Shown here: one piece after another, positions 7,991 to 41,496 of the stretch | Layout: every line of letters starts with the position of its first letter | Position numbering within the stretch: the first letter of the stretch is position 1 | Assembly (NCBI RefSeq): GCF_006345805.1 | Contig: NC_043001.1 | Span: forward strand, 55,304,001 to 55,368,000 | Length of the DNA stretch: 64,000 nucleotides | Origin: Octopus sinensis | Lineage: Eukaryota | Direction of reading: 5' to 3' | The notes under the pieces: model-generated | Databases searched by the model: none | What the model was told of the DNA's origin: nothing | What the model saw: only the letters and a program-made list of their open reading frames with translations | Position numbers and translations under genes: made by a program

Positions 7991-8471
<481 letters not shown>

Positions 8472-9867: not shown

Positions 9868-9903
<36 letters not shown>

Positions 9904-9987
9904 GTACACACATATACCTCAGCACAAGTGTACATATTCAAAATAAGCAATTAGGTATACATAACATATAGATATGTGAAGTCTTAC

Positions 9988-10002
9988 CTGTATTGATAAG
10001 TC
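9988..10002 (-). CDS. robo: Candidate 15-nt symmetric microexon (TYQY if phase 2)
   Basis: ttctgttttccctttcactgcttaccag|GACTTATCAATACAG|gtaaga. Strong acceptor and donor; UGC about 10 nt upstream of the exon. Open in all three phases. Confidence 0.6.
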
Positions 10003-10669
10003 CTGGTAAGCAGTGAAAGGGAAAACAGAAATTCAAATATAAAAATATTATAGAAAATGTAAAATGATAGCAAATACAACAGAGTGTGTGTGTTGTGTGT
10101 GTGCGTGCATATATGTGTGTGCAGATGTATATAAACTGATTGCAACAAATTTTATGTGAAAGTGTTTGCAAAATCAATGTGAATTGGTCCATAAAACCTT
10201 TAATTGATACCTTTATGTGTGAATCATAAGCAACATTACACAACTTGACCTTAAAAAACCTGTCAAATACACACACACATAGCTGAACAATGCAGAAAGT
10301 ATACTTGGTACATGGAAACAGAATGAAGTCTATTGTATATGTAGATATGTAACTTTGTATGTATGTATGTATGTGTGTGTGTGTTATGTTCTTGTTTTGA
10401 CATTGTTCATTAGTCTCAAGTGAGTACCAATCTTATACAAAAATTGTACACATTTCAAGCCTTCAATATCTGGCCATGGAAAAATATTACTTTATTTGGA
10501 AATGGCAGGAGAGAAGGGGAAGGAAGTTGAAACAGGAAAGGTATCTGTTTGTGAAAAATTAGCCTCAACAACTTTCATTTGACCCATACAAGTATGGAAA
10601 AATAGATGCTAAATGATAAAACATACATATTAACATATGACTCTGTATGTGAGTGTGTTTGTGTGTGTG

Positions 10670-10740
<71 letters not shown>

Positions 10741-11104
10741 ATCTATCTGTATCTATCTGTATCTATCTATCTATCTATATATATATATATATATGTATGT
10801 ATACCAATTTTGACCCTCCACAAAATCCCAAATTTTATTTAATTTGCTTTGCAGGAGCAACTGTTTTATCAAAAGCATATATTGTTGTTAAATGCTCGAA
10901 ATACGAGACTAGAAAACAGCCAACAACTGATGAAAAGTCATTCTTTATGTTGTTTGTTTTGTTTTCCATTTGTGTCTTTCATTGTTCGAAAGAATAGCTC
11001 ATGTTCCATGTACTCGTGCTTCGTACTTTTTTGTTGTACACGTTTTATGACATCCTGTGCCCACATATGCATATGTATATGTATAGATGTAAGTATGTAC
11101 ATAT

Positions 11105-11340
11105 ATCATCATCATCCTCATCATCATTTAGCGTCCGTTTTCCATGTTAGCATGGGTTGGACGGTTCAACTGGGGTCTGTGAAGCCAGAAGGCTGCATCA
11201 GGCCCAGTCTGATCTGGCAGTGTTTCTACGGCTGGATGCCCTTCCTAACGCCAACCACTGAGTGTAGTGGGTGCTTTTTACGTGCCACCCGCACAGGAGC
11301 CAGACGGAGCTGGCAATCGGCCACGAACGGATGGTGCTTT
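11105..11340 (-). mobile_element. Retroposon 3' end with (GAT)n tail (family C, RTE-like)
   Basis: catcatcatttagcgtccgttttccatgttagcatgggttggacgg...gctggatgcccttcctaacgcc. Related copies at ~24900-25080, 26590-26690, 35490-35740, 43200-43420, 44430-44660, 49260-49400, 57730-57870, 58690-58976, 60400-60520. Confidence 0.7.
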
Positions 11341-11621
11341 TACGTATATATATATATGCATATATATATTATTTATATTATTATATATATATAAAGTTCA
11401 CTGATGTTTTGAGCTTGTGCTCTTCTACAGAAAGGATTGAGAAGAAAAAAATGAAGAGAGAAAAAATGTGTAGAGATTAACAGTTCAATATGATTAAATG
11501 GCAGGAAGAAAGAGCCTGACATACACACACACATAGGTACATTTATACACACACACACACACATGTAAACATATACACACACATACACAGCTCTCTGTGT
11601 CTCAATATATATATGTGTATA

Positions 11622-11702
<81 letters not shown>

Positions 11703-12523
11703 CACACACACAAACATGAATAAACATATGAAGAGAAATAATTTAACAACTAGAGGAGGGAGAAGAGAGAGAGAGATAAAGAGAAGAAAGTGAGTGAAGA
11801 AACTTTGAGAATTAAAATCTAAAAACAAAAACAATACAAAAAATAAAAAAGAGACAAGTTAACAGTTTTTGATCAATAAAAATAAATTTCATTGAAAAAT
11901 TATTGTCAGTTACAGACAGCAATGAAGTGTTGTATCAGCTCACTTGTGAAGTCAAACTCCTCATATTTATTATAAATTCACTATAAATGAACCAATCGGT
12001 AAGGTTTAACGGAATCACTTGACTTGTTAGAAATAGCAGCCACATTTTCTCTCATATAGCATTTAGTATAAAAAGATGGGGTGAGGAAGAATATATTAAA
12101 TGATGTAGTCAAAGATAAGTTGTTGTGCAAAAAAAATAACATCTATATAAATATAAAAAGGCTTGATATGTTCACAGCTGGAATGCCTTTAGTCATAGAC
12201 ATTATTCGTTATTTAAAGCTGATCAAAGGATAGACAACAGCAACAAAATTGTCAACTTTGAGATAATTTATTTTCTAGAATAGACTTGTATCTTTGTCCA
12301 GGAGGGAATGAAAGTCAGAACAAGTGGCATATTCAACACAAAGTTATTCATGTTGTGTTTTGAAATAGTGTGATAAAATCAGTACAACAATTATGATGTT
12401 TTGAACAGACCATAAAGAATAATTCTAAACCATTATTCTTATGCAGAAAATATTTGACACTGACCTCATAGTCATAGTTCCAGTACTTATCCTATTTGCA
12501 TTGCCATCACTGTTCGTCTACCC

Positions 12524-13037
12524 CAGTGGTTCTCAACCAGGGTCTATGAGACCCCAGGTGTTTCATATAAGACTTTTGAAGGTCCATGTGAGCAAAATAG
12601 TAAATTGGGGATCCACAGTAATATTTTAAGGGTTCATGAAAAAATTTTTCTTTGGCCTTTAAAAAGGGCCCGTTGTGACTCCGGTCTTTCATATAAGGTC
12701 TTTGAGGGTCCATGTGAGCAAAATAGTAAATTGGGGATCCACAGTAGTATTTTAAGGGTTCATGAAAAAATTTTGCTTTAGATATATTTATTGCAAGAAA
12801 CAGCTCAGTTTCTTTCTCTAATGTTTTACACAGTTTAACATGTTTCTGGTCAATGAAATATGTTCTCTCAGAGTGCTATTTTCAAACTTACGCAAGTGAA
12901 CATGTGAAAAACAAAATGGAAATTTTGAAAGAAGTGACTATAAAGCTAGTTTTTAAGCATCGAATGGCTATGGGGGTCCACCAGAATAAAACAGTAATCA
13001 AAGGAGGTCTACGGATAAAAATGGTAGAGAACCATTG
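12524..13037. mobile_element. hAT-like MITE with an internal ~137-bp tandem duplication
   Basis: TIRs CAGTGGTTCTCAACC ... GGTAGAGAACCATTG. A duplicated ~85-90 bp block at ~12551-12640 and ~12688-12773. Confidence 0.75.
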
Positions 13038-14774
13038 GCCTTCACTATACCTTTAACCCTGATTTTCCTGCAGACTTCTGATTTATATATGTTGCAGCTA
13101 AGCATCAACTGTATTATTCTCATCAATAACAGAGAGCCTGCTAAGGCTATGCATGGGCACAGTTACTCCTAAATATTAAGTCATAAAAAGAAAATAAAGC
13201 TTGAATGTTTGGTAAAAGAATAAAATGAGACTCCTGTCTCCTTTACTATCCATAAAGTCATAACTTTTAGTTTTATGAATCCACAAGATAGTAACTGAAT
13301 TTGTGAGCCAAAGGATCACATTTTATGTGAATGTGGAACCTGCAAGAAATAGCAACCTTGAATATCACCTTACATTCTAACTTTCAAAACACTTTGAAAA
13401 GAAAGGGGACAGATTAAATTATGTAACCCAAGATAGACAATCTCTTCTTTTTTTGTACTTGCTTCAATCATTGGACTGCAGCCATGCTGGAACACTGCCT
13501 CAAAGGTTTTATTTTTAAATAGTTGACCAACATTAGTATTTATTTCATTTTAAGCTTGGTACTTATTCTATTGTCCCATTTTGCTGAACTGCTAAGTTAC
13601 ACGGACATAAACAAACCAATACCAGTTGTCAAATGGAAGCAGGAAACATACACAAAGATATACATGCACATGATGAGCTTCTTTCAGATTGTGTATCTAC
13701 CAAACCCATTCATAAGACTCAAGACAAAATCCATTCACAAGACTAGCTCAGAGCTATAGAAGACACTTGCTCAAGTTGCCAAATAATGAGACTGAACGTG
13801 GAACTATGTGGTTGGGAAATAAACTCCTACCACACAGCCACAACAGAATAATTTTGGCTGGAGTGTAATAGATCATGAGTGCCATAGCACATGACAACAA
13901 CAACAATAACACCAACAACTAATTATCAGAAAACATGAAGAATAGCTATCAATAAATCACATAGTATATTCAGAGCAACAAACCAGATAATTTAAACAAA
14001 ATAGAAATTTTTTGCTTGAAATATCATTGATTGAAAGATGGATGTGGTAAAAAGAAATACAAAGATGAGATATAAATTCCTGAAGCAATCTGGTTACAAG
14101 AAGATTTATTTACTCAGTACTTTTGTTCATTTAAGTAGAGTATTTAACATAAAGAGCAGAGTTTGTCTTTCATTATAACACATCATAGACGGAGGTGATA
14201 AGCAATGAAGAATTAAATCTAAAATTACGCGGCTTACAAGTTACGTTTGCAGATACATATATACAACTTATCAAGACTTGTAAATGCGTTATTACTTCAG
14301 CCTCTATTATATAATTACATTAACACATATGAGAGTCAAACACAAAGCTGTGTGCATACATATGAAGTTAGTGTGTGTGTATTTGAATCTACAAGTGAGA
14401 GAATACAAAGAATTCAATTCATATGGCACAAAATATATCACTTTATTCAACCTAGTATTACAGTACGTGACAACTATTAGTATATTGTTTCTATAAAATA
14501 TTGCAAAGTGACAGAATTTGGATACATGTGAGAAAAGAGAATATATAATATATGTATGGCTTCTGTCATGTTCCTTGAGGTATATGATATGAACAGTGTA
14601 CTTACAATTGCTACATATTGAAGTATAATATATATATATTTTTTCTTTTCTTTTCTTTTTTAGTTTCAGCTCAGAGCTGCGGCCATGCTGATGCAATAAT
14701 ACGAGGGAATATTATTCCAAACTTACAGGGAAAAATTCGATTTAGAAATACTGAATCAAATTTCACAAAATATA

Positions 14775-14805
<31 letters not shown>

Positions 14806-14897
14806 AATTAGAAAAAAAAACACCTTTTATCAATTCAATAATGAAAAATTAAATTATACCATTTAGAAAAATTACATACTATAGAAAGATATATATA

Positions 14898-14950
<53 letters not shown>

Positions 14951-16840
14951 ATGTACACACACACATACATAGATACATACACATACACACACATATATAC
15001 ATGTATCATCATCATCAGTTTAATGGGCCCTATGAGGTGGGGGCAGCTGGCACTTTGTTCCAGGACCCACCAGCAGACTGAGTTTAATGTCTGCATGAGT
15101 TGGATGAAGTTTTGTGAGGCATGTATTCTACAGCCAGATACCCTTCCTATTGCTAACCCTCACCTATTTCCAAACAAGGTAATATTTCCATTTGGCAAGA
15201 CATTATTGGAATTGAATACTATTCATAGTATGGCTGTGACATGCATTTACAAATATCACATGATGTCAACAGATGGAGGCACAAATACACATTCACACAC
15301 ACACACATGCATATACAAATAGATACATATATTCATATATACATCTGTGTGCATATATATGTATATATATCATATATTCTTTTATTTTTTTTACTTGTTT
15401 CAGTCATTTGACTGGCCTTGCTAGAGCACTACTTTGAAGTGTCTTAGTCAAACAAATCAACCCCAGGACTTATTTTTTTAAGCCTAGTATTTATTCTGTC
15501 AGTCTCTTTTGCTAGTTACGGGGACATAAACACACCAATACTGGTTGTCAAGCAATGAGAGGGGGACAAGACACACACACACATCATATATATATAATAG
15601 GATTCTTTTAGTTTCCATCTACCAAATCCACTCACAAGGCTTTGGTCATCCTGAGGCTACAGTAGAAGACACTTTCCCAGGGTGCCATGCAGTGGGACTG
15701 AATCCAGAACTATATGGTTGGGAAGCAAGCTTCTTACCACACACCTACACCTGCACCTATATATATGTGTGTGTGTGTGTTTGTGAGAAAGAAATTAGAA
15801 TTCACAAGACTCTTTATTAGTCACTACAATCATTCAAACTCATCATGCACAGGTGCCTTGCAGGTGAGATACTGTACAAACAGTTGTAGTGCATCATAGG
15901 TGAAGATATGTCTCCTCAGGTGACTTGTCAAAAGGTACCTCATTTTTTAATCTCCATTTCACTTATTTCTATTACACTGCATTTTGGTAGTTGTAGTGTA
16001 CTACATGTCTACCTGAGGAACTGGGTCATAATGTAGAACTCTTCTCATATAAGCAATAAGATAACTTAGCAAGAATCGAAAAAAAAAATATAATATGAAA
16101 ATAGGTAAATGAAACAATATGTTATACACTGATAATGAAAACACTGTTAAATAAAACCATAAAACAACTATGTGATTGGCATACTACAAGGTGTGTACCT
16201 GAATAGAAAATTATTACTCATCTATTTATCTATCTATGCATACACACATGATGGGCTTCTTTCAGTTTCTGTCTACCAAGCTTAAAATCTACTCAAACAA
16301 CTTTGGTCAGCCTGGGGCTATAATAGAAGAGACTTGACCAAGGTGCCATGCAGTGGGACTGAACCTGAAGCCATGGTGGTTTGGTAGCAGAATTCTTAAC
16401 CATACAGCCACACCTGCACCTATGCATGTGTGTGTGAGTGTACACACGCACACACATACACTCATGTATAAGCACACATACTCATGTATCTATATACATG
16501 ATACACACAAATACACATACACATGCATGCATATATACATACACACACACAAACATCAAATATGCATAAACAAAAGCAACAAATTCTAAATATTATGAAG
16601 GAATATTAAAAATATCACTGCATTTCAAATTTAAGATCAATTTGTGCAGTTTTATATGAACACAAATACTTCTGCATTATGCTCCTTAAAATGATATTGC
16701 AAATTTGTTACATAAACCAGTTATTGATTTACTAAGACTACATCATTCTGATGTTCAAACTTTTATGACACTCATAAATGACCTTTGCTTTCATCAGAGA
16801 ATCAAAACAGCAGTGACTCAGATCAAATTCGAAATCAATG

Positions 16841-16843
16841 ATA

Positions 16844-16893
<50 letters not shown>

Positions 16894-16910
16894 AATGTAT
16901 ATATATATAA

Positions 16911-16948
<38 letters not shown>

Positions 16949-17010
16949 GTATATATATATATATATATTATATATATATAATGTATATATATATATATAT
17001 ATATATATAA

Positions 17011-17064
<54 letters not shown>

Positions 17065-17085
17065 GTATATATAATATATATATAA

Positions 17086-17133
<48 letters not shown>

Positions 17134-17178
17134 GTATATATATATATATATAATATTATATATATTATATATATATAA

Positions 17179-17216
<38 letters not shown>

Positions 17217-17237
17217 AATGTATATATATATATATAT

Positions 17238-17279
<42 letters not shown>

Positions 17280-17561
17280 GTTATATATATATATAAATGT
17301 ATATATATATATATAAATGTATATATATATATAAATGTATATATATATATATATATATAAATGTATATATATATATATAAATGTAATATATATAATATAA
17401 TGTATATATATATATAAATGTATATATATATATATAAATGTATATATATATATAAATGTATATATATATATAATATATAAATGTATGTATATATATATAA
17501 ATGTATATAGATATATATATATATATATATATATTATATTATATATATATATATATATATA
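16841..17561. repeat. ~720-bp compound (TA)n array interrupted about 20 times by AAATG
   Basis: Directly visible; no C and only sparse G on the plus strand. Confidence 0.97.
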
Positions 17562-17771
17562 TATTGGTGGAATATACTCTCATTTGTGTGTATGTGTTTA
17601 TATACATATATATATATATATACATGCACACACGTACATACAAATCACACTCATATCCCTATTGTTATGATGCTAATATAAGCATTTCTATATATATAAC
17701 TGAAACTCTACTTGTCAGATTCACTATCTATCACATTCTCCCTAAATGGCATATCTCACAAGGTCTCTTAC

Positions 17772-17783
17772 ACCAACCATTCT
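17772..17783 (-). CDS. robo: Candidate 12-nt symmetric microexon (EWL in phase 2)
   Basis: CTAAC branch point at 17806-17810, then attttctatttctttccttcag|AGAATGGTTGGT|gtaaga. Confidence 0.45.
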
Positions 17784-19025
17784 CTGAAGGAAAGAAATAG
17801 AAAATGTTAGACAGTTACCTAGATAGACAGACAGATAAGAAAAGTGAAAGAGAAAGACAGAGGGTAAGAAAGATGTTTTTACCTATATAACTACCTAACA
17901 AGTAATGTGATCTCAGTGCTTGTCCAACAACTAACATGACACCAATGTATGCTGGCTGGTCTTGCCAACAAGGAAGCTCTCACTAGCACTGTTAGAAATT
18001 ATGTCCTGTAAGTTTACCATTATCAATTCTCTACAGGGAAAGTTCACTGTTATCAATTCCTCATCATGTATTCAATAAAATAGTTTTTAATTATTAATGA
18101 TGAGATAATATAGATATATTTTTGCAGTAAACTTTCCTCATGGTGAATTGATGGCAGTGAACATACCTGTAATTGTTAGAAACAGTAGCAAAATCTTTCA
18201 AATCACATCTGTCTGTCATCAAAAATAGTATAAAACACTGTAACTCCAAATTTACAAAATATAGGATGACTATGACTAGAATGCATTCCACTAATATTTG
18301 CTTGATCAGAGTTTATTTTGAGCCAATGAGTGAACTTTACTTAGTCTTTCAAACTGCTAGAAATAGTAAACAAATTTTCCTCAAATCACATCCTACTGTC
18401 TTAAATTAGAATAGAATATTTTAGACAATGCAGTCTGATATATACGAATACCATTCAGAAAGTGGTTCTTTTCTTCATATACTGCTTTGGTCGTCCCAAG
18501 GCAGTAGTAGAATACACTTGCTCAAAGTGCTATGCACTTATTTATTTAATCTCAAATCAACTGCACTTGAACTCAGAACCACATGGTTGGGAAGCAAGCC
18601 TCTTACCACACAGCCACACTTGCACCTATATAGTATGTTTCTCTCTTCCACCATTGCTTGACAACCGATGTTGGTGTGTTTACGTTCCCATAACTGAGCA
18701 GTTCAGTAAAAAAGATCGATAGAATAAGTAGCAGGCTTATGAAGAATAAGTCATAGGATTGATTACTTTGACTAGATGGTGGTGCTCCAGCATGGCTGCA
18801 GTCAAAATGGCTGCAGTCAAAATGACTGAAACAAGTAAAAGAACAAAAGAATAATGAATATACTATGTAGGTGCAGGTGTGGCAAGAAGCTTGTTTCCCA
18901 ACCACATGGTTCTGGGTTCAGTTCCACTGTATAGCACTTTGGGCAAGTGTATTCTACTATAGCTTTGGGACAACCAAAGCCTTGTGAGTTGATTTGGTAG
19001 GCAGAAACGGAAAGAAACCCATTGC

Positions 19026-19056
<31 letters not shown>

Positions 19057-22000
19057 ACTATGTACCTGTGTTTGTCTCCCACCACTGCTTGACAATGGTG
19101 TAGATGTATTTACTTCCCCATGACTTAGCAGTTTGATGATAGAAATCAATAGAATAAGTACCAGGCTTAAAGAAAAGTACTGGCATTGATTCATTTGAGT
19201 AAAAATTCTTTAAGGAAGTACCTCAGCATAGCTTCCCCCTCAAGCCCAAAACCAATAAAAGATAAGAGATACTTTCTTTAAGTTGTGTTTTAAATAAAGT
19301 GTAATTACATAATATTTTCTTAAATATCATTTTCTTAATTATATTTTCTATTTAAACTACAAATTCTTTCCATTCTATAATAACTTTTCATATCTTCTGC
19401 AAAGGAGAAAGTTAACAATCAAGATTTCTTTTTTTGCAGAGCCACCAACAGAGCAGCAGAGAAAAAAAAAACAACTTATACTTTGGAGCAGCATATCCAA
19501 AATCTGGTGGGTCAGATGCTTGCAACACAGTAGACTCTAATGCACCAAGGATCAGGTGGTAGTGTTAAGGCATGTGATAGATATGTTTATCAAAGAAGAA
19601 CAAAATAGTTACAGTCCATCTGACAAACTTTTGCATAGTTTCCCTTTAAACTAATTCCATTCATAAGAGTCAGGTCAGCCCAAATATATGGTAAAAGACA
19701 CTTGTCCAACATGCTGTTGACCTATCCACTTTATAGCTGAGTAATCACTGATAGAAATTAACCAATCAATCAAAATCAGACACTGGCTACGCGAAACAAT
19801 GTGCACATATCGAACTTCTTTTAAGCTATCCATTGCAATTACATCAGAATGAAAAACAGGATGCTTCAAACAATTTCAAAAAGAGGTGAAAATACATTAA
19901 AAAAAAATAATAGAAAATTATAACAGTCAAAATGGGTTTGATTATCACAAAGTGATGTTTAGTTTTGTACAAAGAAAGAAAAAAAAACTTGTACTTTATT
20001 CTACCATTACTTATTCTGATTGTTATAAGAAAATTTCACAAGAGAAAAAAAAACTGAAAAGAGATAAACAGAAATAAAAACAAAAAAAGCAACAAAACTA
20101 CTACTATCTACCTCCTTAACCTGCAAGTGATGGGAAAGGTTGGATGAAGTTTTCTTTGGACAGAAGAATAAGAGAATAAAGACAAGAATACATTAAAATT
20201 GCAACTGGTAATGGCTATGCTGCAAACAATGGTTTGGTTCAATGATTTGGGAGCAATTTATAAAGATTACTGTCAAACAAAGCAGATTAGCCCAATAAAT
20301 CATATCACCCATTACTAAACACTGAATCATTTGAGATCTATTAAGGCAGGCATTTCTCAACTTGTTTTCAGTAGTAGACTCTCTGTGTAGGTGGAGTGTA
20401 CTTTGTAAATTCACAGGTCATATGTTCAATTCTAGAGAAAAGAAATGTCTTAAGTTTTAGCAAACATTCCATGATTATGTATTTGAAAAACATATGTCAC
20501 TATGACTCTGGGTTATGAACTAAAGAAGGAACCTCTATAACATCATTTTGCTTTCTAGAAATAGCAGTGATATTTCCTGCAAATCTCACCTTACCACCAT
20601 ATCACATCAAGAATCAAAAGGTAGAAAACATGATATAGACTTCTATATGATATTTCTGAAAGTTAAATGATGAGATAATCATGGATGGAACCCCTTGGAG
20701 TACAATATCTCTTTGATCAGGGATAAAGAGAGGGCAATAACATCAGCAATAAAAACTAATGAGGGGGTCTCTATATGGTTTGGGAAGCAGTTATAGCTTT
20801 CTTAAATCATGCTGTACCATCTTCGAAAAAGAAATACACAGCCAACAATACAGTCTTGTATATAAATAATATGTCTAAAAAAACACACAAAAAAAAAGCA
20901 AGAAGGACAACAGGAAAGCTTTTGGCTATAAGTCTACTTAATAATGGAAGACCTGAAGCAAAACAACAAATTAGAATGATTGATATAGAATGTATTATCA
21001 GGTTAGTCAGGGCACTTATTATGACTACCACATTCATACAGTTCATGTTTGAATGAACTAGTATATATTTTGGCCTACAATATTTGAAAGCATGGCTCCT
21101 CTAAGAGTAGACTAACAATCTTGTCATTTTGAAGCATTGAATAAGATACTTCCATTGCATAGCTTTACCTTAGCAAAGCTGATAGAGACTACCTCAAAAC
21201 ATCAAGGCTTGGTTGAAAGATTTGTTACAAATTTTGGCATAAGGCCAGCAAGTTTGGGGGAGAGGGTAAGTTGTTTACATTAACCCTAGTGCTCAACTGG
21301 TACTTATATTAGTGATCCCAGAATTATGAAAAGTAAAGTCAACCTCAGCAGAATTTGAGCTCAGGAGGAAAAAACAAATGAAATGCTGCCAAGTATTTGC
21401 CTGGCATGGTGAAGATTCAGCCAGTTTGCCACCTCACTTGATTGAAATAATAATATCTTTACTTTGGCATTGCAGATAGAAGTTAGCTAATAACAAATCT
21501 TGCTTAAAATATTTCAGATATAAAAACCAGAGGAAACTAGAAGTGGCTTATGTTTGAGGAAACTAGTGATGGCTTATGACAGCAACAAGTCTGTTAACAA
21601 AATCTGCAAATTTGGGGAAGTTTGCATGCTGCAGACAGATGAAAATACTAATGAGCAATGACCTTTATCAGAAAGGAAAAGCAGGAGGACACACACGCAC
21701 ACAGGGGGGCTTTGCTTGAACTGTCAGTACTTCTCATACCTCATACTTCTCCATGCTATCTTATCCAAATAAGTGTAGCTTGCAAAATATTCATAGAGTT
21801 GACAGAGGCTACCCAACTTTGTTCATATTTGGTTGAAAAACTCATTCAAAGTATCTGACCTCAAATCTGATCAATGCAACCTAATATTGATATGTATTGA
21901 TGAGCAAATTGGTACAGTTAATTGAATTAACCCCAGTACATTGCTAGAAATTATATTAATGCAAAGATGTCTATAATAGGATATGACCCCAAAATGCTAA

Positions 22001-23689
22001 GAGTGGAATTAGTTTCTAAAAATATTAATTCAGCACGAGGCTGGAGAATTGTAAGACTGGAGGTTAGTCAGTTGATTCAACTACTCTAGTTTGTAATTAG
22101 CATTTATTTTATTTGTGCCAAAGAGATGAAAAGGCAAATTCTGATGCCCAGAGGAGTGAAAACTGAAGTCAATTTCAGAAGAAGGTAGGATTTTAGAGAT
22201 AAAACTAAATATTTGAAAATGATTTTTAATTTTCAACTCTAATAATTCTGTCATATTATTGCTCAAAATAAATATTGATTGACTGATTAATATATTAAAA
22301 AAAAAACACGTTGAAAATATAATTTATATTAAATTGAAGTTAAGAAAAGGATTAATATGACTTACAATGAGAAGAGGAAAACTAAAGACAAAAAATAACA
22401 AAGAATAAAAATTTGTGCAATAACTTATAATGTTATTGAAGACACAGCTATTACAACACACACATACACACACACAATGATAAATGAGTAGACAAACAAA
22501 AGAAGTTGAAAATTTCAAAGACTTAATCACATTGTCATTTACTTTTTCACCAAATAAAAGCATATGATACTTCAAGTCTGAATTATGTTGATATGATGAT
22601 GTTAAATAAAAGTTAAGGAAGAATTTTTAAATGTTTAGAAAGAAATCTATAAAACAAAATGAAATGAAATAAAATAAAAGAGAACAGAATAAACTGCAAA
22701 ACTGGAAGTATTTATCAAGACAAGATGAATTGCTGTTGTTGATTCAGAGATGAGAAGGATCAGTCTTTTAATATGATAAAAAAGTCTTATAAAACTTAAG
22801 ATGTATCATGGAAATTTAACAATGGTTAAATTAATATTTATATATATATTTATACATACATATGTGTGTGTGTGTGTGTGTGTGTATACACACATGCATA
22901 CATATGTAAACACACACACACATAATACATATCATCATCGTTACATCTATACATACAAATATGCATGTGTGTGTATTCACGTGTGTGTGTATATATAACA
23001 CATACATACATATATACATACTTACATACATACACACACATGTAAATGGATATTAAATGGTAATGATTATATATATGCATACGCGCACACACACTCAAAA
23101 GATTGGGTAAAATTTTCTGTGCACAAGGAAGGGGAATAAAGACAACAAAAAAATTCTTTCAAAAGTTCTTATAAATGTTATGATTCTCAAGGGTTTCTAT
23201 TCATCATGCTCTTGCCTCAAAGACTTGAGTTTTGCTTTAAGTATTTTTCAAAAACATATTGGAAGCAAAAACAAACAACTAGTCACAAAATGAATAAAGA
23301 AGCTTACTAACAAAATAATATTGATGATGACAATGATGATGATTACAGTAATGAAGATTAGAATGATGATGATGACTATAATGATAATTATGATGTCAAG
23401 GACATTGTGATGATGATGATGATAATCATGATGACTACAGTGATTATAAAGATAACAATAGGGAAGGATGGGGAAGTGGAGATAATTTCTCGTATGAATA
23501 TAAAATAAAAATATAGTTTCATTGAAAACATTTTCTGCAATCCTAAATTTCAAGGGTCATACACACACGCACTCATACAAACACACACACACACATAAAA
23601 TAATGATGCTCCAGTTTGGCCTTAGCATGGTTAAAACAATCTGAGAAACTAAGAACACATACAATAATAATAATAATAATAAGACTTGA

Positions 23690-27095: not shown

Positions 27096-27131
27096 CAAAG
27101 CTGTGCATTGATTACTTTAGTATTTATATAC
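27096..27131 (-). CDS. robo: Candidate 36-nt symmetric microexon YINTKVINAQL
   Basis: gtacttttcttttatttag|GTATATAAATACTAAAGTAATCAATGCACAGCTTTG|gtaaag. Open in phase 2; donor only moderate. Confidence 0.3.
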
Positions 27132-27168
27132 CTAAATAAAAGAAAAGTACAACTATGCTTTGAGAGAC

Positions 27169-27235
<67 letters not shown>

Positions 27236-29969: not shown

Positions 29970-30004
<35 letters not shown>

Positions 30005-30136
30005 AACAACAACTACTACTACTACTACTACATAACTCAAATCTCAAATAAATAATATGTTGCAAACTTTCCATGATAAAAAACTAACAAGTATAGATAA
30101 GGAAATACAGAACAATCAATAACAACAACAACAATA

Positions 30137-30184
<48 letters not shown>

Positions 30185-30434
30185 TATAATAATAATAATA
30201 ATAATAATAATATAATAATAATAATAATATGCTATGTAAACAACAAGACTAAAGGTTTATTTAAAAAGAGGAAAAATGAAAGATAAGAGGTTGCGTTTTT
30301 CATGCTTTTTCTAAAGAGGAAGGAGGAAGAAGGAGAAGAAGAAGAAATGGTTGTTGTATTGGAGGTTTAAGAGAAAGAGAATTGTGAGGATTTGAAACCT
30401 AGCCCACAGGTTTGGTTTCTAGAGTACAGCTTAC

Positions 30435-30461
30435 AGACACATGACACCATCTAACACTTGA
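30435..30461 (-). CDS. robo: Candidate 27-nt symmetric microexon QVLDGVMC
   Basis: ttttattatttcttatcag|TCAAGTGTTAGATGGTGTCATGTGTCT|gtaagc. Open in phase 2. Confidence 0.4.
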
Positions 30462-30785
30462 CTGATAAGAAATAATAAAATAGTTTTTAAAAAAAATAAG
30501 AAAATACAGAACTGAAAAAAAAACACTTAAAAATAAATTTTGAAATTTTCCAGGAAATAGACGATGCTGAGATGGGTAGGAATACAACAATAAAGAAGAA
30601 TTAAAACTGAAAGTAAACAGATATAAAAGGAAGAATGCAGAAAGAAAAAAAACAACAAAAATAAAGAAATAAACTAAGTAGGAAGATAGGTGTGGTGGCA
30701 GTGATGGTGTCAGTGTAGAGGTGTTGGCAGAGGAGTGATTTGAAATAGAAAAAAAGGAAAGCAATTGATCACCGGTTTAGCTCAC

Positions 30786-30818
30786 CATTTCATATAGCCA
30801 GCAGGTACAACAGCATAT
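30786..30818 (-). CDS. robo: Candidate 33-nt symmetric microexon YAVVPAGYMK
   Basis: tttttccctgtccttgtccag|ATATGCTGTTGTACCTGCTGGCTATATGAAATG|gtgagc. Very long upstream pyrimidine tract. Open in phase 2. Confidence 0.65.
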
Positions 30819-31039
30819 CTGGACAAGGACAGGGAAAAATCACAGTAAAAATAACTGGTAAAGCTAATAAGGAAGCGATACACAGAAAGAGAGAATGGGG
30901 GGGGGGGAAGAAGGAGAGATAGAGAGAAAGAGAAGCAGAAGTAAAACATGGGAAAGAGTGAGTAATGGATGGCAGGAGAGGAGATACTAAAAGCTGTGGG
31001 AAGATATTTTAACACTGAGGATTTGGTACGATATTAGAG

Positions 31040-31859
31040 GCAGTTAATAATATACTTTCTTCATTGGCACAAGCCTGTACACTTTGGGGTGGGGAGTGGT
31101 CAATCTCATCAAACCCAATACATCATTACTGCTTACTTTATTAACCCCAGAAGAATAAAAAGCAAAGAAGACTCTGCTGGAATTTAAACCTAAAATTTAG
31201 AAGGAGGACATGACTAAATACTGTATCATACTTTGTTAACTGCTTTATTGAGTCTACCAACAATTTTAAGGAGAAGGGGTTAATCAAATGAAAGAAGAGC
31301 AAAATTGACCTTGGAGGGATTTGAACTCAACATGTAAAGAGCTCGAACAGATGTAGCAAAGCATATTTTTCAGTACTTTAACAATTCTGCTAGCTCATGT
31401 CTTTAGTATCAATAATAATCCTTTCTAATTCTGGCACAAGGTCAGCAATTTTGAAGGGAAGGAAAGTTGATTACATCAACCCTAGTGCTCAACTGGTACT
31501 TAGTTTATCAACTCCAAAAGATGAAACATAAAGTTGACTTCAGTGGCATCAGAACATAAAGAGCCAAAAGAAACGATGTTAAGCATTTTTTTTCTGGTGT
31601 GGTAATGATCTCATCAGCTCACTATCATAACGGTTTCAAATCCTAGCACAAGGGCAGCAATTTTAAGTGGCTTACGTAAGGTGATTGCACAAACCCCACT
31701 GCTTGGCTAGTATTTATTTTATCAACCCTGAGAGAATTAAAGGCAAATTCAACCTCAGCAGTATTTAAACTCAGAACATAAAGCAAGAAGAAATGCCACT
31801 AAGTATTGTGTCCAGTTTACTAATGATCCTGCCAGCTTGGCATGTTGTTAATAATAATG

Positions 31860-31918
<59 letters not shown>

Positions 31919-32944
31919 GATGATGATGCAGTACCAGGTAGTGGCTCTTGTGGCTGCTGATCTTAACTGATTGGAAGTGTTATCATGTACATTGTTTTGT
32001 CTTGGTATAAAAGATGGGCTACAGCAAATATTCTGCTCAATACCACAGATTTGCTTGTCATTTGTTTGGCCTTAACCAGTTGAGCATGTCCCTTAGTGGC
32101 TGACGATATGTGCATCTCCGATCATGAGCAGAAGTAGTGGGGGAGCATCTTAGAGGTTTGGATAATTCACCTTAGGAAACATGGGTTGTTCGTTCAACAT
32201 CCTTAAACAATTCTTATTCAGGGATCTTTTGGGCAGGATGGGCTACTCGACCAGAAGAAAATTCTAACAGGGCCCCACCTGCAAGGTCGTGTGCTGTTTA
32301 TCTTGATATGAGATCAATATGTTGCGCACATATGGTTCTGAAGCATGTGCCTGGTGTACCCTTATCAGACAGGTAGTCATGATGGGTATACTGGGCTTCG
32401 TATATTTTACCCCAGTGTCACTTTGATGGCATGCACTGCTCTCTCACTCAATGATAATAATAATCCTTTCTATTGTAGGGACAAGGCCTGGATTTTTGTG
32501 GGGAGGGGAACAATCAATTACATCGACCCCAGTACTTGAGTGGTACTAAAAGGATGAAGGGCAAAGTTGACCTCGACAGAATTTGAACTTGGAACGTAGC
32601 GACAGACAAAATACCACTAAGCATTTCGCCTGACATGCTAATGATTCTACCAGCTTGCTACCTTAATAATAATAATAACAATAATAACAGCAACAACAAC
32701 AACAACAATTATAATGGTTTTAAATTTTGGCACAAGGCCATCAATTTCAGGGGAGGAATTAAGTCGATTATATTGACTCCATTGTTCAACTAATACTTAT
32801 TTTATCAACTCCGAAAATATGAAAGGCAAAGTTGACCATGACAGCATTTGAATTTGAACTCAGAACATAAAAGAAGAACTGCCATTGTCTGGTGTGCTAA
32901 TGATTCTGCCAGCTTGCCACTTTCATAATAATAATGATAACAAC

Positions 32945-32998
<54 letters not shown>

Positions 32999-33545
32999 TC
33001 TTTCTACTTTAAGCACAGGGCCTGAAATTTTTTTGGGGGAGGGAATATTTGATTATATCGACCCCAGTACTTGACTGGTACTTAATTTATTGACCTTGAA
33101 AGGATGAAAGGCACAGTCGACATCGGTGGAACATGAAGACAGACGAAATACTTTCTACTATAGGCACAAGGCCTGAAATATTGGGTGGTGGGGACAGTAG
33201 CTTACATCGACCCCAGTGCTCAACTGATACTTATTCCATTGACCCTGAAAGGATGAAAAGCAAACCCAATCCTAGCAGAATTTCAACTCAGAACGTAAGG
33301 ATGGAAGAAATACCACTAAATATATTTTCCGGCATGGTAATGATTCTGTTAGCTCTCCACCTTAATAATAATAATAAAAATAATGGTAATTTCCAACATT
33401 AACACAAGGTCTCAAATTTATGGAGAAACCATTATGGTCAATGAAACCAACTTTATACTTGACTTGTTTTTATTTTAAGAAGGATGAAAGCAAAGCTGAC
33501 ATCAATAAAATTTGAATATAGAATCTAAAGGGACATACGTAAATA
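31040..33545 (-). mobile_element. Head-to-tail array of about nine family B tRNA-like SINEs separated by (AAT)n
   Basis: Recurrent unit aggcacaaggcctgaaatt...atcgaccccagt...gaaaggatgaaaggcaaagttgacc...atttgaactcagaac...ctaatgattctgccagct. Confidence 0.8.
31926..32458 (+). mobile_element. Interspersed repeat, probably a 5'-truncated non-LTR 3' end, flanked by (AAT)n
   Basis: GC-richer 530-bp unit ending ctctctcactcaat(gat/aat)n. A partial second copy lies at ~28715-28880 (gcaaatattctgctcaataccacagatttgcttgtca). Confidence 0.6.
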
Positions 33546-34814
33546 TAAGAGGGTATCTTGCCCTCTGATTTACCAGTTCTGCCACTCCACCAAACCAAAT
33601 GATGATGATGATGATGGTGGTGGTGGTGATGATGATATTCCACTTCCAGATATAACTGAAGATATGTTATAGATAAAATTTTAGCTGCCAATAAATATGT
33701 GTGTGTACAGTAATTAGCTATAAAATAGATGGTTAAGATTTTAGATAAATTATATGCAGAAGACATTTACAAATATGGCCAACTTGCAGAGCATACTTGT
33801 AATAATTTCTCTCATAGGAATATATTTGTTGTAAGGTGAAACATTTCTTTCATGGAGAGGTAGTTGTTTAGTTCTACTATCTTCCTTGTACTTCTAAGTG
33901 TTTTACCTACATCGTAGATAAAATCTTAACCACTTACATAATATAGCTAATTGCTAGGGTTGTTGTAAATCTTAAACATCAAATTTCTGTGTGATACTGG
34001 ACTATGTTAGAGAACAGTCTAGCTTCTGTAAGTTGAATGATTAGAAAATTACTCATCATCCTGCCACTCATCTTAACCAAGTATTGCTTAAATTCTAATA
34101 AATACATCAATGTTTATATTATGGACACACACACACACATGTCTGCGCAAACATATTTTGCAAGACATTTTATATCCTTCAGTTTTTTAGTGGTTCCAGT
34201 CATGAAACTGCAGCCACACAGACACATGACCTTATAGAGCCGTAACCAATTATATCAAACCCAAAGCTCACCTATCATTTACAGATATAAACATCACAAA
34301 GTATTTTATACAGATAAACACACAAAACTTTCATGGCTTTCATCTACTACACTTCACACACAAGATATTAGTGTACCTGAAACTAAGGTAAAACACCTTT
34401 GCAAGATGCTGTGGTGGGGAGATCAAACTCAGGGCCATGTTGTTCCAAACTTCTTAACAACACAATGATACCTGCACACAGGTGCATGAAAGGGTGTGGG
34501 AATTGCTGTAATTAGTTATTGTGAGATTCATATAAAATTGTACTTATATGTCTGCAGGCAGTGAAGTAATATATACATTCATGTAGATTGGTAGATAGGT
34601 AATATAGTGTGTGCAAGGTCTATCAATCTCTCAGTCTGTCTACTTGTTTACCTACATAATTATCATAATCATGCTGGTATAGATTGGACAAATCAACAGG
34701 ATCTAACAAGTCTACAAACCATGTCTTGCTCCAATGTTTCTGCTTTGGCATTGTTACTATGGCCAAATATAATATTTTTAACACTAACCACTCTCTAGAG
34801 TGCAGTGAGAGCTT

Positions 34815-34849
<35 letters not shown>

Positions 34850-35427
34850 CACACACACACATACATATCTATTTATCTATACACACACATATCTATATAT
34901 ATATTATATATATACACACACTTTATTTCAATTCAAGTTGACTAGTGTGGTCAGACGACCTAATGACATTAGGGGAGACACTAACAATTAAGAGATATGA
35001 AACTCTCCAGACATTAAGATAAGTTTTATTATATGTATTTTGTATATTTTTTTTATTCATTTATTTATAAGCTTTTTCTAATTGTTTTTATTTATTTATT
35101 TTTTTGCTTACTTCGTTCACCCCATTTCTTGACAGATCAATTTATGTTGTAGCTTAGAATGTACTCAAGTTTATTTTTTTGTTTAAACTGTGATTATAAC
35201 ATTATCAATGTGAGGTATATACTAAGTAGGATAAAGTTCAGTTTAGCAAACCAGTTTCATTGATAAACCTGCAAAATTGCCCCTTGCCAGTATTGCTGGA
35301 ATAATATCAATATGATGTGTTGTTTCATGTATTATGTAATAATATTTCTGCAATGATCTTCTAGTAAAATGGTGATGAAACAATTGTAATATTATGCAAC
35401 AAAATATGTTAGTCCATTCTATTAGTC

Positions 35428-35473
<46 letters not shown>

Positions 35474-35742
35474 GATGATGATGATGATCATCATCATCAT
35501 CGTTTAACGTCTGCTTTCCACGCTAGCATGGGTTGGACAGTTTTGACTGACTGCTGGCAAACCAGATGGCTGCACCAGGCTCCAATCTTGATCTGGCAGA
35601 GTTTCTACAGCTGGATGCCCTTCCTAACGCCAATCACTCTGAGAGTGTAGTGGGTGCCTTTTACGTGCTACTGGAACGGGGGCCAGTCAGGCAGTACTGG
35701 CAATGACCTCGCTCAAATCTTTTTACATGTGCCAGTAAGGCG

Positions 35743-35774
<32 letters not shown>

Positions 35775-36383
35775 GGTGGTGAGCTGGCAGAATTGTTACT
35801 GCACCAGACAAAATACTTAGCAGCATTTTGCCCATGTCTACGTTCTGAGTTCAAATTCCACTGGGGTCAACTTTGACTTTCATCCTTTTGGGGTCAATAA
35901 AATAAGTATCAACTGAGCAAGTGGGGTCAAAGTCATTGGCTTATCCACTCCCCCAAAACTGCTACCCTTGTGCCAAAATTTGAAATCAATACTTATATAC
36001 ATGACCAGCCTTTTGGCTTCTGTCTACTAAATCCACACACAAGTTTGGTCACCTTAGAGCTACAGAAGACATCATCTGCCCAAGGTTCTACATAGTGGGA
36101 CTGAACTTGAAACCACATAGTTGGAAGCAAACGTCTTCAACCACACACACACACACACATGTCTGAAAAAGTACTCAATACATGTCACTGACTCTATGTC
36201 CATATTCATATAGGATTGATTCACTGTGCCCCAACTCAGAATTTCTTGTCATACGTGATCATTCAGAAGTTTGAAAATAATTTTTGCCTGAATCATTTCA
36301 TAAGGCAAAAATAACTGAGTGGCAACAAAGGGAATCATCAGCTTCTTATAAAGACATGTGTGTGTGTAATTATCACCACAATC

Positions 36384-36706
36384 CAAGGGTTCTCAACCAT
36401 CTTTTATCTATGGACCTCTTTAAATACTATTTTATTCTTGTCATTTGGTGTTTAAAAACTAGTTTTATAGGTACCTCTTATAAAACTCCTATTTTTTAAA
36501 GTTTTTTTTTTTTTTTTACATTGTGAAGGTTGAACTATGTAAACAGAGAAACCCAGCTGTTTTTTGCAGCAATACATACCAATACATACATCTGAAGCAA
36601 AATGTTTTTCAGACGCCCTTAAAATACTATTGTGGATCCCTAATTTACTATTTTGATGTGTTGGACCTCCTAAAAATCTTATATGGACCCTGGTTGAGAA
36701 CCAATG
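36384..36706. mobile_element. hAT-like MITE
   Basis: caagggttctcaacc ... ggttgagaaccaatg termini; interior related to the 12524 element. Confidence 0.7.
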
Positions 36707-37858
36707 ATCATAATCAATTAACGTCAATATTTCAGTACTGGTATGGGTTTGATGAGTGTCAGCTCCTAACCTTTCATCATGGTCCTTTCTGATACAATGT
36801 ACTTGTGAATGTAAGCCTGCATTTGATAAATAAGGCTGGGCAAATTTTTAACTGTAATTCTGCTCAGCGCTACACAGCTAAAAGTACAAGAAGATATTTA
36901 ATTCTCTCTGTGCATTTGTATGTAATATGAACTGTTATCTTCATATGCAATCATATGGCATATATCTGGTGAGTAGCAACTTTCCAAAGATTACTACAAG
37001 GACATACACCACCAATACCACCACCAAATACTACCGTGGCATTTGCCACCATCACCAACAACACCAATATAGACAATGCCTTCACCAACTGCTACTATAG
37101 CATTTACCATTACTACAATCACTGACTACTACTACAGTAATCACCACCAGTGCTGCCAACCTACAGCCAGTCTTCCACCACTGCCCTCAGTGAGGCCTCT
37201 ACAACACTAACAATACCATCAATTGGGAAGCTACTGCTACTAGCACATGCACCAAACGAAAATGCCATACTAGGGCATCACCTTGATGAATTTTTAGTTG
37301 AATGAATCAATCTCAGTACTTGTTATTTTTATTTCTTAAAAGTCTGGTACTTATTCTGTTGTTCTCTTCTGCTGAACTGCTAAGTTACATGGACATAAGC
37401 ACACTAACACCGGTTGTCAGGCAGTGAACAAACACAGACATAAATATATGCTCACACACACACATATATATATATACATATATAATACACACACACACAC
37501 ACACATATATATATAAGGCTTTGGCTGGCCTGAAGTTATAGTGGAAGACACTTGCTCAAGGTGCCACACAATAAAACTGAACACAGAACCATGTGATTGG
37601 GAAGCAAGCTTCTTACCACACAGCCATGCCTGTGCCTATGGTATGGTATGTTGTGATTAAAAAAAAAATTTGTTTGATATTTCTAGCAGGTTGAATGACC
37701 ATATGAAGGTACTCTTGTTTGTTTGACAATGTGTCTGTAGGATGGGGTGATGTTGCTGCTGATAATAGTGAATGAAAAGAAACTGAGAAGAAGTTCTGAG
37801 AGGAGATGAGAGATTAGAAGAGACTGAAGTCAGAAAGGAAGAAACCATAAACTGAATA

Positions 37859-37893
<35 letters not shown>

Positions 37894-38711
37894 AATAATA
37901 ATAATGATAATAATAATAATAATGGAATAACAGATTAGGAAGGAGGAGACATCTGTTTTTTAAAGGAGAGGAAGTTAGACATTTCTGAAGTAAGTTAAAA
38001 AGACACATGTAACGTTAACATTTCAGTGACATTTCAGAAAAAGATAACATGATTTTTAGTTTAAATCTTAGATTTTAATAGTTCTGTGGGATTGTAAAAT
38101 GAACAGCTCAGATTTTAATTGTTTTAGTAGATTTTTCCCGGTTCATCATTAGTAATTGTGTTGGCATTAGCATCATCGTTATGATCATCATCATTGCTGT
38201 TGTCCTCATCATCGTCGCCACCATCATCGTGATTGTCATCATCATCATCATCGTCACTACTACCACCACTACCATCGTCATCATCATCAAATATTATGCT
38301 GTTGTTATCATCATACTCATAAAAATATTAAAAAATATTTTAAAAATCATACATCATCAATATCTTTATTATAATTAAATTTCCATGTAATGTTCCTTCA
38401 TCTGCTGTCCTCGTGGCAAATAAAAGCAATCATTATTATCATCAATAGCAGTAGAAGACTTTTCATTGTTGTTATTGTTTTATTGTAGTAGTAGTATTAG
38501 TAGTAGTAGTAATACTTGGATTTGTTTGTTACTTTTGTGCAAAAACAACAAAAAAATAACATAAAAACAAATACACATGAAATTAAGAATAAAAAGAAAC
38601 CTAAATATTCAAATTGAGGATTCACATTCACTATATTTGTTGATATACATATCAATTGCATCATTGAGTTGGCTCTTAATATAAATTTCTACCCAAATTA
38701 CACAAACTTAC

Positions 38712-38726
38712 AATATATGCTCAACA
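38712..38726 (-). CDS. robo: Candidate 15-nt symmetric microexon (R)VEHI
   Basis: tcgttgctctgtag|TGTTGAGCATATATT|gtaagt. UGC just upstream of the AG; long distal pyrimidine tract at 38815-38920. Open in phase 2. Confidence 0.45.
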
Positions 38727-39048
38727 CTACAGAGCAACGATTTTGACACTTGATAATTTAGATTTTTTAAGTTGAATGTAAACAAGTTCATTAACATGGG
38801 GAAAAAAGCATTTGATTGATGGAAATAAAGAGAAAGAGACGGGCAGAGAAAGAGGAAGAGAGAGAAAGAGGGTAAGAGAGGGGAAGGCAGGGAAATGGGT
38901 AACAAAAAATATTTTAAAAAATGCTGATGCCACATAGTATAAAAGAACAATGTAAAAGTCACAAAACCATTCAAATGCTAATGGCTGTAGAATGGTAAAT
39001 AGTTCTAATATTGAAAGACTTTGAAAGAATATATTTTGTTTTACTTAC

Positions 39049-39079
39049 CGAGCTTGTTCTTCCTGTTTTTGAAGAGGCG
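39049..39079 (-). CDS. robo: Robo juxtamembrane microexon, 31 nt (T)PLQKQEEQA(R)
   Basis: Acceptor ttttttcgtttctttgttgtggcag, donor TCG|gtaagt, phase 1 to 2. Open and in frame with the TM exon. Confidence 0.75.
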
Positions 39080-41051: not shown

Positions 41052-41096
<45 letters not shown>

Positions 41097-41496
41097 TTAT
41101 ATCTTTTACTTGTTTCAGTAATTAAACTGCAACCATGCTGGGGTACCAGCTTAGAAATGTTTTCAATCAAAGGAATCGACCCCAGGACTTATTCTATCAG
41201 TCGCTTTTGCTGAACCACTAAGTTACAGGGACATAAACACACCAACACCAGTTGTCAAATGGCGATGGGGACAAACATAGACATAAAGATACACACACAC
41301 ATATATATATGATGGGCTTCTTTCAGTTTCTGTCTACCGAATCCAATCACAAGGCTTTTGTTGGCCTGAAGCTATAGTAGAAGACACTTGCCCAATGTGC
41401 CATATGGTAGGAAGGAGTGAACCCAGAACCATGTGGTTGGGAAGCAACTTAACACACAGTCACACCTATATCTATCTATCTATCTATCAATCTATC

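Follow-up and report, generated by a model that had tools for sequence, protein, structure and literature searches.

A probable cassette microexon in the juxtamembrane region of a coleoid cephalopod Robo gene

A 64,000-nucleotide (nt) stretch of the Octopus sinensis genome (contig NC_043001.1, positions 55,304,001 to 55,368,000; hereafter, the window) is, by sequence comparison, the part of a coleoid cephalopod Robo gene that extends from the fibronectin type III (FN3) domains to the juxtamembrane region, encoded on the minus strand. A first-pass annotation of the window had proposed that nine tiny AG...GT units scattered below the transmembrane (TM) exon, between positions 9988 and 39079, give rise to a combinatorially variable juxtamembrane tail. 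The present analysis points to one genuine 15-nt cassette microexon and a constitutive 31-nt exon rather than to a nine-unit combinatorial array, a reading to which we assign a probability of about 0.8. Robo receptors set axon repulsion, and the cassette represents a concrete, testable splice event for cephalopod neural wiring.

Under this model, the TM exon is followed by an 8.1-kb intron, the 31-nt exon (TPLQKQEEQA) and an intron of more than 39 kb that holds the cassette 29 kb downstream. When included, the cassette would insert Thr-Tyr-Gln-Tyr-Arg approximately 29 residues beyond the point where the hydrophobic part of the membrane span ends (…SIWLC), and before CC0. By adding two tyrosines, it may provide a new phosphorylation or docking site or shift an existing one, change adaptor docking or alter trafficking, and inclusion of the microexon may be neural and subject to SRRM/eMIC-type control. 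Both proposals are based on what is known in general about how Robo signals and about microexons in neurons. The coordinates of all features discussed below are given in Table 1.

Conservation of the 15-nt microexon

The 15-nt exon of the window, GACTTATCAATACAG, and the cassette found in a cuttlefish complementary DNA (cDNA) (L001, GCCAG/GAATTACCAATACAG/GAATGC; here and below, slashes mark exon or segment boundaries), which encodes NYQYR, are identical at 13 of 15 positions and match in position and phase. Both Tyr codons and the AG/G Arg junction are conserved between the two sequences. Joined to the 31-nt exon, the window unit reads CG/G ACT TAT CAA TAC AG/G, that is, R-TYQY-R, and the net five-residue insertion keeps the frame and the flanking Arg codon. 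Unit 9988-10002 thus has the properties of a microexon (at most 27 nt, a multiple of 3, frame-preserving), and not only its sequence but also the flanking AG and GT are conserved between distant species.

The probability of such a match arising by chance is low. The pattern consisting of AG, the cuttlefish 15-mer and GT has a single match in the window at up to 4 mismatches, which lies on the minus strand (9986-10004) and deviates at 2 of 19 nt. Shuffled sequences yield 0.06 matches per window at up to 3 mismatches; assuming independent and identically distributed nucleotides, 0.0015 matches with up to 2 mismatches are expected in the whole window and 0.00035 on the intron's gene strand, and not one of 1000 simulations under a first-order Markov model produced a match at this level. 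Even in coding exons, nucleotide identity between the window species and cuttlefish is only 75-84%, so that the match, with its intact splice sites, would be unexpected in a neutral intron, and its conservation in the middle of the intron points to purifying selection.

The exon is also distinguished by its splice signals. Its splice score, computed as the sum of acceptor and donor scores under rough general metazoan consensus matrices, is 15.5, which ranks first among the 818 in-frame units of the intron; the 3' splice region contains pyrimidines at 17 of 20 positions and has an acceptor score of 8.4. The 15-nt exon is alone in an intron of more than 39 kb, 29,046 nt from its start and with at least 9,987 nt behind it. 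Conservation of sequence, position, phase and splice sites leads us to infer that the window species uses this exon, and does so alternatively. A role as a recursive-splicing exon was considered as well and rejected because joining ...GCTCG to GACTTA rebuilds no GT donor.

Juxtamembrane isoforms in cuttlefish

Members of the protein cluster represented by the cuttlefish Robo P0001 differ from each other exactly in the juxtamembrane segment. Ten cuttlefish sequences cover the junction. Seven of these contain neither insert (MYS-TPLQKQDEQA-RNANLL...; 1559 residues in the full-length ones), P0001 itself contains an Ile-Val-Ala insert (MYS-IVA-APLQKQDEQA-RNANLL; 1562 residues), P0171 contains NYQYR (...QDEQA-RNYQY-RNANLL; 1564 residues), and P0172 contains both IVA and NYQYR (1567 residues), the four lengths being an exact fit to the four combinations. 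The 15-nt cassette (…QARNYQYRNANLL) is included in two of the ten sequences (P0171 and P0172) and skipped in the other eight, and it combines freely with the 9-nt acceptor choice that is responsible for the Ile-Val-Ala insert, yielding 2 x 2 = 4 juxtamembrane forms. P0171 and P0172 derive from RNA-seq contigs of 6.2 and 5.8 kb, in which the cDNA reads ...TAC AGC A/CT CCC TTG CAA AAG CAA GAT GAA CAA GCC AG/G AAT TAC CAA TAC AG/G AAT GCA AAT... The run from which P0172 originates, SRR19578103, is cited in transcriptome papers on Sepia esculenta (golden cuttlefish) (e.g., PMC10141105).

Among the 181 fetched proteins, YQYR is present at the juxtamembrane position only in P0171 and P0172. The juxtamembrane segment is invariant, with no cassette, in the seven annotated Gigantopelta isoforms and in the other fetched lophotrochozoan Robo proteins. 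Given that it is missing from these gastropod and other lophotrochozoan sequences, the cassette may be a cephalopod innovation.

The Sepia pharaonis Robo gene spans 215 kb within a 2.03-Mb contig of GCA_903632075.3. Two protein models from this species, P0163 and P0160, are separated by a 33-residue alternative segment, GESDLDSVHLQCGGFSEEDSNGEGLNEGYESVT, in the distal cytoplasmic tail, and the Gigantopelta isoforms vary in the corresponding region; accordingly, the main annotated splice variation of mollusc Robo lies far downstream of the window.

The constitutive 31-nt exon and its acceptor

Sequence comparison shows the 31-nt unit to be a genuine constitutive exon. It matches the cuttlefish sequence TPLQKQDEQA, a tblastn search aligns it with residues 881-896 of P0001, its peptide is seen in all ten cuttlefish sequences covering the region, and it is homologous to the segment AVPVHKSDDSS of gastropod and other lophotrochozoan Robo proteins. 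Its splice score of 11.2 is inside the range of the verified exons. The exon is slightly over the usual microexon size limit and, because 31 is not a multiple of three, is required for maintaining the frame. As the first-pass annotation had recognized, it sets the phase for everything downstream: the TM exon ends one base into a codon (...ATG TAT AGC A/GTAAGT), and the 31-nt exon passes on to the next exon two bases, CG, that open an Arg codon.

In cuttlefish, a second acceptor located 9 nt upstream converts this exon into a 31/40-nt exon and adds Ile-Val-Ala in frame. The last nine intron nucleotides of the window are identical to this extension, as can be seen from the comparison of the cuttlefish cDNA L002 (AGCA/TTGTGGCAG/CTCCC) with the window (ctttgTTGTGGCAG/CGCC). 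The dinucleotide that precedes TTGTGGCAG in the window is TG instead of AG, and there is no other AG in the upstream 40 nt, so the cuttlefish-type alternative acceptor seems to be absent here; it appears either to have been lost or never to have been gained in the window species.

A different arrangement is observed in a compact Robo gene of a distant lophotrochozoan (L003; ENA ERZ25069853, contig ctg29144l), where the region from the FN3 exons to the exon with the PYATTTLI motif occupies only about 5 kb. At positions 8212-8412 of this contig, the TM segment and a VPVHKADD stretch, the counterpart of the 31-nt exon, are encoded in one uninterrupted open reading frame (ORF), so that the intron that parts the two in cephalopods may be absent. 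With 32-55% identity in the compared regions, this gene is uninformative on microexons.

Gene identity and exon structure

The first-pass annotation identified the gene as a cephalopod Robo, and both structure and sequence searches agree. In a search with the spliced translation, the ectodomain of human ROBO2 (6iaa) is the top match among solved structures (E = 2e-32, query residues 2-264, all three FN3 domains), and the next-best PDB family is RPTP-F (6e-17). The best hit in the representative library is P0001 (1562 residues), which is 89% identical to the window over 323 residues and belongs to a 90% cluster that includes ROBO1/ROBO2 of Acanthosepion (Sepia) pharaonis along with several full-length proteins from RNA-seq assemblies. 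The window thus encodes three FN3 domains close to the membrane and, after them, one TM segment, and is closer to Robo than to DCC, contactin or RPTP. The immunoglobulin (Ig) region and the PYATTTLI and LLPPPPEHPPP motifs are present in the cuttlefish ortholog P0001; the window's own Ig and CC0-CC3 exons lie beyond its limits.

Exon 5 begins at IRCYGED (tblastn). The TM exon is 84% identical to the cuttlefish cDNA L001 over 163 nt (blastn), and 87% identity is seen between the TM exon with its flanks and a genomic contig from a related species (L004; SRR11869384). No normal-sized exon was reported below the TM exon, and this is borne out: tblastn of the full-length cuttlefish Robo finds nothing credible in positions 1-39048 for residues 897 onward of P0001, and the segment between the 31-nt exon and the microexon shows no homology to any downstream Robo exon in tblastn and k-mer comparisons. 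Of the 5-mer matches to the tail of P0001, 16 fall on the gene strand and 21 on the other one, and there are no colinear ones among them. The next canonical exon (cuttlefish RNANLLSTEMSQKEP...) is not in the window; the intron below the 31-nt exon is therefore longer than 39 kb.

Table 1. Positions of the exons, introns and candidate splice units of the Robo gene in the window
Feature	Positions	Strand	Remarks
FN3-coding exon	62249-62099	-	spliced translation, tblastn
FN3-coding exon	57427-57309	-	spliced translation, tblastn
FN3-coding exon	55363-55141	-	spliced translation, tblastn
FN3-coding exon	50078-49963	-	spliced translation, tblastn
FN3-coding exon	48451-48286	-	spliced translation, tblastn
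Robo TM exon, 162 nt	47147-47308	-	encodes ...VPEKPSIMRQPWFIGMLIGTIGGTVWIALCIVSIWLCRKKHTQKKLMEQSGMYS; 93% identity to P0001 (tblastn)
Intron, 8,067 nt, TM exon to 31-nt exon	39080-47146	-	from the two exon boundaries
TTGTGGCAG, last 9 intron nt before 31-nt exon	39080-39088	-	identical to the cuttlefish Ile-Val-Ala extension
Constitutive 31-nt exon, CGCCTCTTCAAAAACAGGAAGAACAAGCTCG	39049-39079	-	encodes (T)PLQKQEEQA + CG; acceptor ggcag/, donor /gtaagt
Intron, 29,046 nt, 31-nt exon to 15-nt microexon	10003-39048	-	from exon boundaries; holds the seven unsupported candidates
15-nt candidate (RVEHI)	38712-38726	-	acceptor -3.4, total -2.3, rank 59; no homolog; most likely chance
33-nt candidate (R-YAVVPAGYMK-W if alone)	30786-30818	-	score 15.3, rank 2 of 818
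27-nt candidate (QVLDGVMC)	30435-30461	-	total 0.5, rank 33; no homolog; most likely chance
36-nt candidate (YINTKVINAQL)	27096-27131	-	donor GTAAAG -0.8, total 4.7, rank 11; no homolog; most likely chance
9-nt candidate (LR)	20112-20120	-	acceptor 7.7, weak donor GTAGAT 1.3, rank 4; no homolog; unsupported
12-nt candidate (EWL)	17772-17783	-	acceptor 9.7, donor 0.2, rank 3; no homolog; unsupported
24-nt candidate (ISKSNFS)	14727-14750	-	acceptor -3.6, total -0.6, rank 42; no homolog; most likely chance
3' splice region of the microexon	10003-10030	-	pyrimidine tract tttctgttttccctttcac, UGC at -10 to -8, ttaccag
Predicted alternative 15-nt microexon, GACTTATCAATACAG	9988-10002	-	acceptor ttaccag/, donor /gtaaga
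Start of the intron after the microexon, 9,987 nt	1-9987	-	next exon past the window edge

Chance background and the other candidate units

All nine AG...GT units that had been listed are indeed found on the minus strand, and each of the eight units other than the 31-nt exon has a length divisible by 3 and stays open in the phase required. It is also correct from the sequences that joining the 33-nt or the 36-nt unit to the 12-nt unit creates a stop codon, TG/A. Such units are abundant in this sequence. Between positions 9988 and 39079, the gene strand contains 2558 AG...GT units of 9-36 nt, of which 898 have a length divisible by 3 and 603 stay open in the phase needed, and the respective counts for the opposite strand are 2471, 871 and 574. 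When the donors are limited to the five pentamers accepted in the first-pass annotation, the gene strand has 62 units and the other strand 68. Counted over the entire intron downstream of the 31-nt exon, the gene strand harbors 3478 units of 9-36 nt, 818 of them frame-preserving and open. More generally, AT-rich giant introns give rise to hundreds of frame-preserving AG...GT pairs, among which only transcript comparison picks the real one.

The eight in-frame units rank 1, 2, 3, 4, 11, 33, 42 and 59 among the 818 by splice score. The verified exons (six ordinary and two small ones) score from 3.2 to 15.5, with GTAAG as the donor in seven of the eight and GTATGT in the remaining one; the units at 38712, 30435 and 14727 fall below every verified exon (Table 1). 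Under a Markov-3 null model, 0.10 in-frame units are expected to score at least 12; two are observed, one of which is the validated 15-nt exon.

Several considerations weigh against the reading favored here. At a score of 8 or higher, six in-frame units are observed versus 0.93 expected, with a maximum of 4 in 60 Markov-3 simulations, and, when all frames are counted, there are 12 such units versus 3.5 expected under the Markov null; we attribute part of this excess to real pyrimidine tracts and microsatellites that are missing from the null. The score itself is a heuristic based on general metazoan consensus tables. The per-run assemblies from which the only ten cuttlefish sequences derive capture dominant isoforms, so that rare or octopus-specific microexons would be missed, and both the use and the alternative inclusion of the 15-nt exon in the window species are predicted from conservation with cuttlefish.

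The high-scoring units make it conceivable, although unlikely, that the intron contains, besides the 15-nt microexon, a few lineage-specific cassette or poison exons, first of all the 33-nt unit at 30786 and then those at 17772 and 20112. The score of the 30786 unit, 15.3, is close to the 15.5 of the validated exon and is followed by only 9.9 for rank 3, at a level where the null model expects just 0.10 in-frame units, and the units at 17772 and 20112 have strong acceptors (9.7 and 7.7). However, none of these units has a homolog, and the peptide of the 30786 unit is absent from all fetched Robo proteins. Furthermore, the donor of the 30786 unit, GTGAGC, is unlike all eight verified donors, its pyrimidine tract sits within a CT-rich, low-complexity stretch, and one such unit would appear by chance in about 1 in 10 introns. 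The donors at 17772 and 20112 are weak (0.2 and 1.3), the former in its exon-side context, and the acceptor of the 17772 unit also pairs with a GT located 24 nt downstream, out of frame. Altogether, we put the probability that the 33-nt unit is a genuine exon specific to this lineage at about one in seven.

It is improbable that the intron of more than 39 kb holds more than one alternative microexon, namely, the Tyr-Gln-Tyr cassette and at least the 33-nt unit at 30786. If that were the case, these two units, together with an acceptor choice of the cuttlefish type, would give coleoid Robo a splice code, small and variable among lineages, in the stretch from the membrane to CC0, which could tune Slit-Robo signalling in the cephalopod nervous system.

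Taken in full, the original proposal would have all nine units genuine, eight of them as freely combinable microexons that add up to a juxtamembrane tail of as many as about 65 residues; this we consider very unlikely. The reading frames of the eight units, the fact that four of them are the top four of 818 by splice score, and the alternative splicing of cuttlefish transcripts at exactly this position are in its favor. However, 818 frame-preserving open units occur by chance, with as many on the opposite strand, the units were picked for good splice signals so that their high ranks are partly built in, and three of them score under every verified exon. The peptides of the seven units other than the 15-nt exon are absent at the juxtamembrane position from the 181 fetched proteins, including the ten cuttlefish sequences and every other fetched Robo. 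These peptides are hydrophobic and rich in Cys and Trp, in contrast to the polar sequence of the real juxtamembrane region, and the canonical Robo sequence has no gap that would call for some 60 extra residues. A combinatorial array would consist of several independent verified alternative units in one intron; only one of the eight is supported here, the rest having no counterpart and occurring in numbers equal to chance. Thus, the view that the stretch between the TM segment and CC0 is spliced with microexons holds for a single 15-nt cassette that is included or skipped in cuttlefish and finds no support for the seven other units. Six of these, that is, all candidates except for the 31-nt, 15-nt and 33-nt units, look like chance AG...GT pairs of an AT-rich intron, in keeping with the caveat in the first-pass annotation that some candidates are probably false. 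Repeats detected by self-blastn overlap none of the nine units and do not discriminate between them. The 36-nt candidate adjoins an (AG)n/(CT)n microsatellite at 27171-27231.

Finally, that only the 31-nt exon is real, the 15-nt match being either coincidental or a relic that the window species has ceased to splice, appears highly improbable: the evidence of cassette use does come from cuttlefish, not from window-species transcripts, and a 15-mer match taken alone is short, but the 19-nt pattern with 2 mismatches is expected only 0.00035 times on the gene strand of the intron, and the unit is on the right strand, downstream of the right exon, in the right phase, with the best acceptor-plus-donor score of the intron and with both Tyr codons and the AG/G Arg junction conserved.

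Regulatory motifs and comparison with known splice systems

Full-text literature searches yielded no description of cephalopod Robo splicing and no paper on the cassette. The bilaterian neural microexon programme involves exons of 3-27 nt and the eMIC domain of SRRM3/4. The 15-nt cassette resembles these exons in its length, frame preservation and deep conservation, in lying within a disordered part of a neuronal surface receptor, and in having a strong 5' splice site and a UGC next to the 3' splice site. For the cephalopod exon, neural enrichment and dependence on an SRRM/eMIC protein are hypothetical, and a single UGC is expected by chance. The UGC at position -10 of the microexon (background, 0.77 per 60 nt) is no more than compatible with eMIC-type control, and a GCAUG located 162 nt downstream occurs at background frequency. 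YCAY motifs are not enriched around the cassette (4 and 2 per 200 nt versus a background of 3.6). In motif counts around all units, UGC, GCAUG and YCAY are found at background frequency, and the sequence singles out no regulator.

The nearest known relative in kind is the NOVA-regulated microexon of mammalian Robo1/2 that the first-pass annotation had cited. This exon, e6b, encodes four extracellular residues, is repressed by NOVA via flanking YCAY motifs and raises repulsion (PMC6687390); its isoforms differ in repulsive strength, and neuronal splicing factors control whether it is included (Johnson, Junge and Chen 2019, eLife, PMC6687390). Both e6b and the cephalopod cassette are tiny, frame-preserving Robo exons that yield isoforms differing by a few residues. 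However, the five residues encoded by the cephalopod cassette lie on the cytoplasmic side, in the juxtamembrane region, a different position, so the two are not the same exon; e6b, being extracellular, is not homologous to it (PMC6687390), and the hallmarks of e6b (extracellular location, four residues, YCAY clusters) are missing from the cephalopod exon. Next in closeness, mammalian Robo2 also has an intracellular cassette, exon 21, which encodes 42 residues, raises repulsion when included, is not under direct NOVA control and, in combination with e6b, produces four isoforms (PMC6687390). Compared by description only, exon 21 is similar to the cephalopod cassette in being an intracellular Robo cassette but, at 42 residues, is not a microexon. 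A four-residue microexon already alters the strength of mammalian Robo (PMC6687390); in the present case, a five-residue cassette with two tyrosines is kept between the window species and cuttlefish.

Two other types of alternative splicing provide partial analogies. The 31/40-nt exon of cuttlefish, with acceptors 9 nt apart, is akin to NAGNAG-like tandem acceptors; with TG as the upstream dinucleotide in the window, this choice is probably missing there. As in the Dscam1 clusters and at the neurexin splice sites, independent splice choices multiply the isoforms, with four forms in the case of cuttlefish Robo. Unlike Dscam1 and neurexin, the window contains one supported cassette, and it has neither duplicates or relatives of this exon nor docking or selector elements.

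Repeats and transposable elements

Intra-window repeats cover 22% of the window. There is a 724-nt (AT)n tract at 16841-17564, along with many other microsatellites. A fragment of a mariner-type transposase (Pfam Transposase_1, E = 1.6e-14) is encoded at 2352-2609 on the plus strand, within the long Robo intron. Two adjacent ORFs at 53426-54104 (plus strand), antisense to Robo and located in the intron that separates the FN3 exon at 55141 from that at 50078, show weak matches to non-LTR endonucleases (Exo_endo_phos and Exo_endo_phos_2, both with E = 2.6e-4, under the Pfam cut-offs) and are probably the remains of a decayed long interspersed nuclear element. We also observe a family of repeats of about 90 nt, at 39742-39828, 45316-45408, 47682-47774, 15653-15741, 37537-37635, 53256-53347, 16316-16408 and 51744-51798, which probably represents a short interspersed nuclear element. 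The same repeat, with 75-84% identity, is found at the start of the L004 contig, and its copies translate in one frame to ...GTLGK..., which accounts for spurious 5-mer matches to the Robo tail.

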